This document shows, in pieces, positions 9,917 through 14,719 of a stretch of DNA of 64,000 nucleotides. The notes below the pieces were generated by a model. That model made no database searches and was not told the DNA's origin. It was given only the letters and a program-made list of their open reading frames with translations. The stretch covers positions 496,001-560,000 of the forward strand of contig JBBPEB010000015.1 of assembly GCA_039096225.1 (NCBI GenBank), given 5' to 3'. The DNA comes from Blastocystis sp. Blastoise (Eukaryota; Protista; Bigyra: Opalinata). Made by a program: the position numbers and the translations under genes. The first letter of the stretch is position 1. Each line of letters starts with the position of its first letter.

Positions 9917-12900
9917 TTATGCGAACCAAACGTATCTGCAGAGTAAATAACTATAGAAATGATAATATAAGTAATAAAAAAAATTATAAAAATAATATAC
10001 AGAGTAGAGATGACTAAGGAAATGAGAAGAGTGATAAAACCAGGTAATAAGAAAGCTAAGAAAGTGATCTTATGTCCATGATGTTCGGCGATACCAGCAG
10101 TAACTAAGTTAGCACTAGCACCAACAAGAGTACCGTTACCACCTAAACAAGCACCTAAAGCTAAAGCCCAAGCAAGAGGCTTAATAGGTAATTCTATATA
10201 GAAAGTGAGATATTATTATTATTATTATTATTATTATTATTATTATTATTATTATTATTATTATTATTATTATTATTATTATTATTATTATTATTATTAT
10301 TATTATTATTATTATTATTATTATATACGAAGTTCAGGATCAGTATGAAGAAGTTGAACAATAGGAATCATAGTAGCAGTGAAAGGAATATTATCAAGAA
10401 TAGAAGAAGCAATACCAGATACCCATAAAATAATAAGAATAGCAACAGTAAGACGATTGGAAGGTTCAGCAGCACGAATACCATTAGCAACAGCCTATAG
10501 AAGAAATATGAAATAGAAAATAACATTTTTTTTTAAATAATTAAAATAATAAATAATTAAAATAATAAACAATAAAAAAAATACTTCACCGATAGCTCTA
10601 ATAACACCAAGTTCATTCATTCCTTCAATCATAACGAAAAGACCAGCGAAGAAAAGAAGAGTTTCCCATTCTAATAATTCAAAAGTATGTTTGATTTCTT
10701 CAGGTTTAGCGAGAAGGAGAGTACTAAAAGCACCAGCGAGAGTCAAATAAGCAGCATCAATACCATGAAGAGAATGAAGGAAAAGAAGAATAATAACAGT
10801 TAATAATATTATACCAGCCTTAAGAAGAAGAGGCATGTTTTTAATTTTGTATTTCTTTTCAACATTATCATCAACACGTTTAGAAGTAGCAGGAAGACTC
10901 TTGTGATATAATCCCCATAAATATAAGTAAGCGAAGACCATAACAATAAGACAACAAGGAGCAACATCAGTAATGAAATCAATGAATTGAACATAATCAC
11001 TTAAAAGGTTACCAATCATAATATTTGGGGGATCACCAATCATAGTAGCAGTACCACCAATATTACTGAATAATACTTCAGGAATTAAGAAGGGAATAGG
11101 ATCTACATTAAGAACATTACATAATTCAATAGTAACAGGAGCAAATAAAAGCATAGTAGTGACATTATCTAAGAAAGCAGATAAAATACCAGTAAGAACA
11201 CAAAGAACAATATTAAGAACAAGAGGACGTCCCCCAGAGATACGTACGGCTTTAACAGCACACCATTCAAAGAGACCTGTAGTGGATAACATTTGGACCA
11301 TGACCATCATACCGAAGAGAAGACAAAGAGTAGAAGAATCAATCCAAGCAACAGCTGTGGAGAGTTCTGGAGCTCCTTGAACAAAAGCAATAAGAAGAAG
11401 AGTAAAGAAAGCACCAATGAAAGCACAGACTGTACGATGAACAACTTCTGCTAAGAGAAGACCATAAACAAGAACAAGAATGATAATACCAATAATAATT
11501 CTATATTCTCCAACAGGATTCATAGGCATAGCATCAAGAGTAAAGGCAAGAGGAGTAGTAGAAGCTTCTACAGTCTCAAGAATAACATTTATATAAAGCA
11601 TGGAATTCTATAAATAAATAAATTATTATATATATACATATGTGATTCTATAAATATATATATATATATATATATACATCATGAAGAAGAGAACGAACAT
11701 CAACTTCTTCTAAATCTTCAACTTCTTTAGAATCAGAAGTAGAAACCATAAACATTTTAGTAATATTCACAGCAGCTATAAATAGATGGAGATATATAGA
11801 TAATAATATTTATAATAATAATAATAATAATAATAATAATAATAATAATAATAATAATAATAATAATAATAATAATAATAATAATAATAATAATAATAAT
11901 AATAATAATAATAATAATAATAATAATAATAATAATAATAATAATAATAATAATAATATCTACATACGATCATTTCCGACTTTTTCGAATAATTGATAAG
12001 TAAAGACAGCATCTGTATAACGTTCTAAGGCAATCTTGATTTCATATAAGCCACGAGGAGATTCAGGAAGACTGAATTGCTTCGCTACATAAGGAGCAAC
12101 CGATTTGAATCCTCCCACCATTTCCATGGGATAATCCGTCATACCGACTCCATGAAGACCATCGGAGGAAGGTCTGAAGTTATAAGTATTAAGAAGGACA
12201 GCCACAAGAACACAAAGAATAAAGATGATTCCACCCCATATCATATCCTTAATAGCCAAATGACTCTCAATCTCAGGAGGTAATTGATCATCAATCTCCT
12301 TAGCACTAGGCTCAGCCTCAAGAGCAACTCTATATATATATAATAGGAATAATATAAAGAAAATAAATAATATAATATGAATATTATAAATAATATAATA
12401 TAAATAATATAATAAAAAGAATAAAAAAAATAGAAGAGAAATATACCTTAAGAGATCTTCGGATTGTTCCTTCATAACATGTTCACGACGACTTAAATAG
12501 TTATTAGCACGATTAGCTACTCTATGAGGAAGAGTAATACTGAGTCCGCCTTCCGTTTGAGGTCTGGAGCAGCAGCCTGAGGAAGAGACAGTTTCTACAG
12601 GAGCAGCTGTTCTAGTGGCAGTGTCCATTGGAGGGAGCATAACGCAACGACGAAGGAAAGTATCCATCAACTAGAAGAAGAACAAGAATAGTGTTATTAT
12701 TATTATTATTATTATTATTATTATTATTATTATTATTATTATTATTATTATTATTATTATTATTATTATTATTATTATTATTATTATTATTATTATTATT
12801 ATTATATAGACTATATATACTTTAATGAATCTATGTTTAGATTCAATCTTCTTAGCAGCATTAAAGAACCATTTTTGAGCCATCATAAGAGAGAAAGCAC

Positions 12901-14719
12901 GACCAATATCATGATAATCGTAAGAGGAGTCTTCTTTACCGATGACAACAAGGATATAACGAAGAGGGAGACCTCCATCGATATAAAGGGGATGAGAGAG
13001 ACGAATGAGACCCGCTAAAGTAGAAGGAACGAAGGAAGCTGTTGTGATGAACACCTTACAACTTTCTAACTTAGAATCAGCATTAGCAATAGCATTTGTT
13101 CCATTATCTAAAGGAGACTTTTGATTTAATAAGACATTTTCTAAAGAGGTACGATTCGACATATCAATCTTACCCTAATATATAAATATAGATATATATG
13201 TAGAGAGAGTATTATATATATATATATAGATACCTTATCTTCAAATTCATCAAGAATATGACGAATACAATCCTATAAAAAGAATAATGAATATAATAAT
13301 AATAATAATATATGTAAATATACATTAACATCATCAGCAGGTTGATCTAAGAGAACAACTCCTTCTTCGAGGAAATGACGTAAATAGGCGAATCCATTAA
13401 GTGAGACAGCTCCATATCCATTTTTAGTAGAAGATTCTTCGAAACCATTCTTATATATACCTGTATTCATCCATTCACCATTTTGAGATTTATAGAGTTC
13501 ATTCATTTCTACAACTAATTCTCCACTTTGAGAAGTAGTAGTACTATAATTATCCATATTAATCATTTCTTCACCATTCATAGAACCAGTTCTAGAATTA
13601 GACCAAGGTAGATTAGCATAATAATTGGATGCATATCCCCCGACACTACTGTAGGTATCATATACACCACTTCCCTTACGACTCATATTATTTATATAAG
13701 TATCCGTATCACTACGATTACGCTTCTATATATAGATATATATATAGGAATTATCATAGTATATAGACAATAATCGAAATAGTATATATATATATATATA
13801 TATATACAATGAGTTCAGTTACATCTTCAAACATGCATTTGAATTGATTATTACCAGTAGCGTCAACAAAAATTAAAGAAACCAAATTTATTTATAATAA
13901 TAATAATAATATAATAATAATTAAAACTATAATAATATTGAATAGGATATTGTTATACAGTTGACTCTACAGTCAAAGATTTCATTCGAACTGTTTGTTA
14001 AAGTTAAAACTTCATGTTTTGATTTCTTTTCTTCTTCAACATCAACATCAGCAGAATTGATATTATCTTTCGTTAAAATAGTTTTAATAGTGTCTTTATC
14101 ACGACTATTCAAATAATCCTTTTCTATATATATATATATAATAATTTAATAAAAAAATGTATTCTTTCTAGACATATATAAAGATATTAAAATCATACGA
14201 ACAAATTCAATAAAAGAATGTCCAATTAAGTCTTGTTCTTTAATATGTAGAACTTTCTAAATTTTGATTAAAAAATAGAAAAAAACTATAAATAGCATAC
14301 AGAAGCTTCTTCACTAGCATGAACAATCTTAAGTTCACTATCGTAAGTTAATTCGAAAGAAGAGATAGTAGGTTTTTCCTTCATTTCAACCATTTCAATA
14401 GCTTTTGTACCTTGACTATAAGAATTATAGCAATTATCGGTATTAAATAGCATACGAATTAGGTTGTTTTTCACTTTTAGGAGCATTAACACTATAAAAT
14501 GTAATGATTACAACGATAAATGATGTATCATATCATACGGTGCAGCGACAGGAGCCTCACTCTTGCTGTCGGTCACATTTACAGGTTGACTTTCATTATT
14601 CGATCTATAAAAGAGAAAGGTATCAAAATACTGCCAGTTTATATATACGTTTCTTGATGAACTTGTGTTTCCACAGGATGACTATCTTCTTGTGTTGTTA
14701 TTTTACCTTGTTCAGACAT
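9917..14719 (-). CDS. Chimeric transporter: N-terminal PAS domain + Band-3 (SLC4-type) cytoplasmic domain + P-protein/OCA2-like (ArsB/NhaD, CitMHS superfamily) membrane permease
   Basis: ATG at 14719. PAS: LTYDSELKIVHASEEASKVLHIKEQDLIGHSFIEF...FKCMFEDVTE. Band-3 cytoplasmic: LVVEMNEL...EW...FEE...GVVLLD...PLRYILVVIG...DYHDIGRAFSLMM...FLRRCVMLPP. Permease: SAFLDNVTT, SNIGGTATMIGDPPNIMI, EWETLLFFAGLF, DNIPFTATMIP, ALGACLGGNGTLVGASANLV. Ends RYVWFA* at 9917. All exon junctions stay in frame. Confidence 0.85.
10212..10323. repeat. (ATT)n microsatellite, intronic
   Basis: Near-perfect tract filling most of an intron of the permease gene. Confidence 0.95.
11812..11957. repeat. (AAT)n microsatellite, intronic
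   Basis: Perfect tract in a permease intron; source of the spurious poly-Y ORF. Confidence 0.95.
12694..12806. repeat. (ATT)n microsatellite, intronic
   Basis: Tract inside the intron that splits the Band-3-like domain; source of the poly-I tail in ORF 12671..13162. Confidence 0.95.
13862..13950 (-). other. U12-type AT-AC intron, 89 nt, within the PAS domain
   Basis: Minus strand: 5' ATATCCTATT, branch-like TTTCTTTAAT (plus 13872-13881), 3' ...GTTGAC. Removal gives FDCRVNCIT|ATGNNQFKCMFEDVTE in frame. The nearby GT-AG alternative hits a TAA. Confidence 0.85.

Follow-up and report, generated by a model that had tools for sequence, protein, structure and literature searches.

A Blastocystis gene that joins a PAS domain and a Band-3 cytoplasmic domain to an OCA2-type permease

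The window analysed here is a 64,000-nucleotide (nt) stretch of DNA from Blastocystis sp. Blastoise (contig JBBPEB010000015.1, positions 496,001 to 560,000). Its minus strand carries a gene that encodes, in order, a PAS domain, a Band-3 cytoplasmic domain (Band_3_cyto) and a permease of the P-protein/OCA2 type. An earlier sequence-only reading had proposed this combination as a sensor-gated transporter of new architecture. The analysis confirms that the three domains lie in one real gene and in one reading frame, and the architecture is apparently real, conserved and undescribed. The single continuous spliced frame of the sequence-only reading was recovered: from the ATG at 14719 to the TAA at 9917, 17 exons join into 3468 nt (1155 amino acids) with no internal stop.

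Fifteen of the 16 introns have GT–AG ends and are 40–192 nt long. The remaining one, intron 6 (89 nt), interrupts the PAS-coding part, offers no AG that could serve as acceptor, and has the signals of a U12-type AT–AC intron, namely an ATATCCT donor, the branch-like motif TTCTTTAAT and an AC acceptor; a second genomic copy of the gene, L007, has an AT–AC intron at the same position. Minor introns of the AT–AC, phase-0 kind are known to be abundant in Blastocystis (PMC10639083). Two other readings of intron 6, GT...AA and GT...AAG, also keep the frame; they were rejected because the AT–AC reading gives a PAS segment of exactly the same length as that of the orthologue L017, which is intronless over this region, and because the U12 signals are found in both paralogs. 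A U12-type intron with AT–AA ends is present at another site of an orthologue (L012:3943-3980) and in none of the other orthologues examined.

Pfam was searched one exon at a time, and the joined model was used only for the frame and for hydropathy. Exon 10 alone matches Band_3_cyto (PF07565; E = 1e-12, 48.6 bits against a cut-off of 34.3), in line with the Band-3-like domain of the sequence-only reading, and exon 8 carries a weak match to the N-terminal lobe (Table 1). The corresponding segment of the Blastocystis subtype 4 (ST4) protein matches the solved cytoplasmic domains of NBCe1, AE1, AE2 and AE3 (E from 2e-13 to 8e-8) and also that of NDCBE. The gene product thus resembles the SLC4 proteins (AE1/Band 3, AE2, NBCe1) in having a homologous cytoplasmic domain, with both lobes, N-terminal to what would be a dimeric anion carrier. 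It differs from them in that its membrane domain is IT/SLC13-like and not of the UraA fold (TIGR00834, 92 bits against a cut-off of 599). No match to the UraA-fold domain HCO3_cotransp (PF00955) was found in the gene or its orthologues, and the product is therefore not an SLC4 member. In a profile search of this genome, the sole Band_3_cyto matches are on this gene and its second copy. A separate, intron-rich gene with an SLC4-like membrane domain (L104, C4:~2447700-2450200) has no Band_3_cyto match.

The sequence-only reading had stated that the Band-3 domain normally sits on the SLC4 membrane domain, which differs in fold from that of the ion transporter (IT) superfamily permeases. The difference in fold stands, whereas the link to SLC4 is overstated, as Band_3_cyto is not exclusive to that family: P0222, a protein of 1021 amino acids from a Joint Genome Institute (JGI) metagenome, has a Na_H_Exchanger domain followed by Band_3_cyto, so the domain is a mobile module. 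P0222 is like the window protein in placing Band_3_cyto on a transporter outside SLC4; it is unlike it in its cation–proton antiporter (CPA) membrane domain, in the C-terminal position of the Band-3 domain and in having no PAS.

The membrane domain matches CitMHS over exon 14 (E = 8e-68, 229 bits against a cut-off of 31.9), exon 15 (E = 7e-9) and exon 16 (E = 2e-5), and all motifs quoted by the sequence-only reading are present. Two Asn-containing hairpin motifs, DNVT and DNIP, together with the CitMHS score above the gathering threshold, place it in the IT superfamily. Ahead of the permease are a single transmembrane helix (TM0) and a luminal segment of ~130 amino acids, the layout of the OCA2 or pink-eyed-dilution (PED) proteins; with these elements, which the sequence-only reading had missed, the C-terminal half is predicted to be a complete OCA2-like unit. 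The luminal segment has an N-x-T sequon in common with L017 and is weakly similar to the matching segments of P0062, P0060 and P0179, and it gave no match in Pfam or the ESM atlas. Membership of the PED clade is likely. The best NCBIfam match of the permease is MamN (E = 3e-42, below the cut-off). The window protein shares with OCA2 a predicted cytosolic N-terminus, TM0, the luminal segment and an inverted-repeat permease with two conserved Asn hairpins. It differs in that the 171-residue N-terminus of OCA2 is disordered, whereas here folded PAS and Band-3 domains take its place, and in an inter-repeat linker of ~30 residues compared with ~95 in OCA2.

Relatives of this protein carry the public name 'arsenical pump membrane protein', and the permease could accordingly be read as a metalloid or Na+/H+ exporter of the ArsB, Lsi2 or NhaD type. 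Triparma, which has a related protein, is a silicifier, and the permease has matches to ArsB in Pfam (E = 5e-6) and to the solved ArsB structure (E = 1e-6). The P-protein itself has been linked with arsenic sensitivity (PMC5100055). However, the CitMHS scores are far above those of ArsB, the NCBIfam ArsB models reach only 49–61 bits against cut-offs of 415–760 (exon 14, ~70% of the model), TM0 and the luminal loop are features of OCA2 and not of ArsB (PMC10372470), and Blastocystis does not silicify. An exporter of this kind is therefore improbable, and an OCA2-type carrier is the reading adopted below.

Pfam detects no PAS on the window exons, which are too short for it, nor on the ST4 protein. 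Exons 4–7 are nevertheless collinear with columns 4–22, 23–41, 43–101 and 106–120 of the L017 PAS (shuffle p of 0.027, 0.007, 0.0003 and 0.0007, respectively), and the L017 segment scores above the Pfam PAS_9 cut-off (27.3 bits against 27). The AlphaFold2 (AF2) model of the L017 segment has a predicted local distance difference test (pLDDT) score of 80.9 and matches only PAS structures in Foldseek (probability 1.0). In the ESM atlas, the segment of the ST4 protein groups with PAS clusters at 0.90–0.92. The PAS-like segment of the sequence-only reading is thereby supported through its orthologue, in profile and in predicted fold, and the Band_3_cyto and CitMHS profiles that it had anticipated score above their cut-offs on single exons.

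The sequence-only reading also suggested that the PAS domain couples O2 or redox state to transport in this anaerobe, which would call for bound haem or flavin. The top Foldseek matches of the modelled PAS are indeed the haem-PAS domains of FixL and DosP, and the L017 PAS has a His in the F-alpha region. These matches are at 13–18% identity, with LOV, HIF, AHR and EAG PAS domains scoring similarly, and so indicate likeness of fold only. Further, the ST4 PAS has neither His nor Cys, the L017 His aligns with Thr or Asn in both copies of this genome, no His is common to the orthologues and no LOV motif is found. Without a conserved His or Cys, O2 or redox sensing of the haem or LOV type is unlikely, and we consider this version of the mechanism very improbable; a role of the PAS domain in binding a ligand or making a contact, with no cofactor, appears more probable. 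EAG/ERG K+ channels offer a parallel: they too are ion-transport proteins in which an N-terminal cofactor-less PAS is accompanied by another regulatory domain in the cytosol. They differ in that their membrane domain is an unrelated tetrameric channel and the partner is a cyclic-nucleotide-binding homology domain (CNBHD).

To assess splicing, RNA contigs from two studies (X1, which may be the assembly's own sample, and X2, an independent animal-gut metatranscriptome) were aligned to positions 12835–14760, chosen to be free of long ATT repeats; introns 10–16 lie outside this part. Such contigs can show the presence of a splice form but never its absence, and they drop variants. Contig joints coincide exactly with introns 1–5 and 9, and introns 7 and 8 are accounted for by loose ends and by length, respectively. 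One contig of 2810 nt reaches 2005 nt past position 12835; spliced exons 10–16 would be 2114 nt to the stop, and the overhang therefore links Band-3 to the permease by length only.

The possibility that adjacent genes were mis-joined, by the sequence-only reading or by the assembly, has to be weighed here, as Blastocystis annotations are known to fuse neighbouring genes (PMC10690189) and no single RNA piece aligned over the whole gene. In L017, however, a single exon encodes both the PAS and the N-lobe of Band-3, P0184–P0186 carry Band-3 and the permease in one called open reading frame, and some ten independent contigs, as well as Triparma, repeat the domain order. The artefact is already largely refuted, and what chance it retains is negligible.

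The architecture extends beyond this genome. Band_3_cyto and CitMHS occur in one protein in Blastocystis ST4 BT1 (P0137, KAK8808129.1, 1154 amino acids), in P0138 (XP_014529952.1) and in the distant stramenopile Triparma laevis (P0179, GMH74942.1, 1421 amino acids), each with the order Band-3, TM0, luminal segment and permease. The whole order from PAS to permease is kept in the full-length Blastocystis ST4 proteins, and it recurs in contigs L008–L021, being kept in all Blastocystis contigs inspected. The two Blastocystis proteins named above have a cryptic PAS, whereas none was detected in the Triparma protein; among the relatives examined, PAS is seen only in Blastocystis. In the tree, L017 is the sister of the window gene, and the pair falls with the orthologues of the human subtypes in a well supported Blastocystis clade. 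The taxonomic range of the fusion is a lower bound, taken from the relatives among the matches listed after a length filter.

A prokaryotic origin of the fusion was considered and rejected, as the 80 best prokaryotic loci (L024–L103) show no Band-3 or luminal match and have at most 150 codons upstream. Almost all of these loci, the closest prokaryotic relatives of the permease (42–47% identity), are from Marine Group II archaea (Poseidoniales). Green-algal relatives (Chloropicon-like and Cymbomonas; two loci checked) have no Band-3 domain upstream. As regards one shared origin of the Blastocystis and Triparma fusions, the similarity of their linkers is not above that of shuffled sequences (p = 0.23), the Band-3 tree is dominated by long branches and the permease tree is compatible with a single origin or separate ones.

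No description of the fusion was found in the searchable literature, which holds few subscription papers, and in this respect the novelty claimed by the sequence-only reading holds. It holds less well for the Band-3 and permease pair, which is already visible to Pfam in the public proteins XP_014529952.1 and GMH74942.1. The public names of the Blastocystis and Triparma proteins go no further than 'arsenical pump', 'hypothetical' or 'citrate transporter-like'.

Both Asn hairpins are kept, and the analogy to OCA2 and SLC13 makes it most likely that the protein is an elevator-type dimer carrying Cl− or a small carboxylate. OCA2 has a cytosolic N-terminus, a luminal β-sandwich of 130 residues and two conserved Asn residues, and forms an elevator dimer (PMC10372470). 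We propose a P-protein-type secondary transporter of the IT superfamily in which PAS and Band-3 replace the disordered N-terminus of OCA2. The homodimer would have two Asn-bearing re-entrant hairpins, with the N-terminus in the cytosol and the ~130-residue loop in the lumen, and its cargo may help to balance pH or counter-ions in an endomembrane compartment, for example the vacuole. The Band-3 domains would dimerize below the membrane part and keep the carrier at rest according to cytosolic pH, lipid or partner binding, as suggested by AE2, whose N-terminal domain is involved in pH sensing and fixes the carrier in an inward-facing state (PMC10810954). The cofactor-less PAS could then tune this brake, in the manner of EAG channels, by means of a small ligand or contact with a protein and not of bound haem or flavin. 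We judge the chances that this reading is right and that it is wrong to be about equal.

Several points weigh against it. The AE2 brake needs contacts with the UraA-fold domain, which the window protein does not have, and AE2 is functional without its N-terminal domain (PMC10810954). The substrate of OCA2 is itself disputed between a Cl− conductance and a carboxylate symport (PMC10372470). The full-length AF2 model of P0137, made from a single sequence with no alignment, has a pLDDT of 36.8, too low to be used for the domain contacts or the GOLD fold, and the permease tree was built without animal OCA2 and plant Lsi2 anchors. For this copy in particular, the sole RNA contig that crosses the U12-type intron (X1 record 2) joins 13950 to 13862 with 87 nt skipped instead of 89. 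The acceptor used (AT..TG) is 2 nt upstream of the AC and is out of frame, with a stop 15 codons later.

The main alternative to gating is that the modules at the N-terminus serve as a scaffold or in trafficking, acting in dimerization or in cytoskeletal or adaptor anchoring as in AE1–ankyrin. The AE1 cytoplasmic domain is mainly an anchor (PMC8714990), removal of the AE2 domain barely affects activity (PMC10810954) and the OCA2 N-terminus serves sorting (PMC10372470). The PAS domain also diverges fast, with 14–21% identity between L017 and the human-subtype orthologues. Despite this drift, the PAS fold is retained in every Blastocystis orthologue inspected, and no conserved dileucine motif is found in the cytosolic exons of the window gene outside the folded Band-3 core. 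A scaffold without gating is rather unlikely compared with the gated carrier proposed above.

A further possibility, compatible with the other readings, is that the family is real and that this copy mostly gives an out-of-frame transcript at the U12-type intron (a PAS fragment or a substrate of nonsense-mediated decay), with the intact paralog L007 supplying the full protein. The junction in X1 record 2 is consistent with this, and the 2810-nt spliced contig bears the L007 letter at 13064. The distance from the branch motif to the AC is 11 nt in the window gene; L007 has 8 nt, and a U12 intron of L012 about 6 nt. The longer distance in the window gene could be the cause of the shifted acceptor. 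The in-frame 89-nt AT–AC junction was not seen among the RNA contigs, of which one crosses the intron and which cannot prove absence. The basis for an unproductive copy is, however, one contig from one run of a kind of data that loses variants, every exon of the window copy is open, and spliced 5' contigs of the window type are also found in X2. An unproductive copy is a tentative possibility, with productive splicing the better prospect.

Table 1. Features of the gene in the window and sites of intron difference from its second copy.
Feature	Positions	Strand	Evidence
Whole gene: PAS, Band_3_cyto, TM0, luminal loop, P-protein/OCA2-type permease	9917..14719	-	Frame check; RNA joints; full-length orthologues P0137/P0138
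Acidic/polar N-terminus, probably disordered (exons 1-3 and start of exon 4)	14361..14719	-	Sequence; RNA contigs confirm introns 1-3; low conservation from one paralog to the other
PAS domain (exons 4-7), without conserved haem His or LOV Cys motif	13808..14360	-	Collinear match to L017 PAS
U12-type AT-AC intron within PAS domain (probable; intron 6)	13862..13950	-	Sequence signals; AT-AC intron at equal position in L007; RNA contig X1 record 2
Band_3_cyto N-terminal lobe (3' part of exon 8)	13330..13521	-	PF07565 positions 2-73, E = 0.03 alone (weak); two stretches, E = 3e-28, in full-length P0137
Band_3_cyto C-terminal lobe and dimerization arm (exon 10 and start of exon 11)	12630..13087	-	PF07565 above cut-off
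Predicted single transmembrane helix (TM0) before luminal segment	12191..12241	-	Hydropathy peak at residues ~554-584, next peak 713; also in ST4 and Triparma
Predicted luminal/extracellular segment, ~128 residues, beta-rich (exon 12 end, exon 13, exon 14 start)	11510..12190	-	Length from frame model; positional equivalent of OCA2 GOLD-like domain
IT-superfamily permease, P-protein/OCA2 type (exons 14-17)	9920..11500	-	Pfam CitMHS/ArsB; NCBIfam; tree
Permease motifs	DNVT 11158-11169; GGxATxIGDPPN 11023-11058; DNIP 10384-10395; LGGNGTLVGASAN 10108-10146	-	
Intron 13, precisely absent in L007	11608..11677	-	Copy comparison
Intron 14, precisely absent in L007	10495..10584	-	Copy comparison
Intron 15, precisely absent in L007	10194..10328	-	Outgroup L012 intron at same position and phase
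Intron 16, precisely absent in L007	9951..10000	-	Copy comparison
Six exon junctions without intron here, with 42-80 nt GT-AG intron in L007: 13589, 13482, 13089, 12918, 12515, 10820	10820..13589	-	

The second copy, L007, is itself intact (C4 ~297,800-302,660, opposite strand, 1140 amino acids, 17 introns). Window positions 9917–13830 were compared with L007:3230-7157 (L007 being C4:295500-305400). From exon 8 onward the two copies differ at 27 of 2895 exon positions (0.93%) and the introns that they share are near-identical. A sharp breakpoint lies within exon 7 at window ~13830, with ~99% identity downstream of it and distant similarity over the PAS-coding 5' part, so that the two copies pair different PAS domains with one Band-3/permease body.

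Against this near-identity, the copies show ten precise reciprocal differences in intron presence, six introns of L007 being absent here and four introns of the window copy being absent in L007 (Table 1). There are no exon mismatches within 14 nt of any of the ten junctions, and several of the sites are adjacent, including the three 3'-most. Two sites can be polarized: intron 15 is shared in position and phase with the outgroup L012 and was therefore lost in L007, and the intron at 13089 is common to L007 and the orthologue L017 and was therefore lost in the window copy. This genome also has at least 18 full reverse-transcriptase matches (for example C23:75618-76424 and C10:55024-55842), most of them in open frames of 1,100–2,800 amino acids and several with identical scores, which appear to be a young, intact-looking retrotransposon family. 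The adjacent sites, the two polarized losses and the intact-looking retrotransposons fit mRNA-mediated intron loss, and recent loss by this route after DNA-level homogenization of the two copies is the probable explanation. Alternatives are that the losses are older and survived patchy gene conversion, that introns were gained at the unpolarized sites, or that the pattern is an artefact of assembly; only DNA reads were used to polish the published assembly (PMC12129017). A second near-identical gene pair for the same comparison was not found in three 10-kb DNA searches.

Around the gene (window 7163–23649) are an amino-acid transporter, a cation-efflux protein, an intronless MATE pump and a GH27 α-galactosidase, the last with at least five paralogs at ~76% identity.

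The ten intron differences between copies less than 1% apart may have caught mRNA-mediated intron loss in progress, and so bear on the open question of genome streamlining in Blastocystis (PMC12129017). For the transporter, the chimera is conserved across Blastocystis, including the human subtype 4; the misleading public name 'arsenical pump' can be corrected, and a PAS domain missed by Pfam in annotated proteins is exposed. What OCA2 carries and how it is regulated is not settled, and opinions differ on whether the SLC4 cytoplasmic domain acts as a brake or as a scaffold; this natural chimera permits both questions to be tested in one protein. A bolder proposal, which we hold to be doubtful, is that these proteins are an undescribed, stramenopile-wide class of OCA2-type carriers under a borrowed SLC4 cytoplasmic domain, in which the PAS of Blastocystis makes a directly ligand-gated elevator transporter. 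If this were true, the Band-3 domain would be a portable gating module across unrelated membrane folds.

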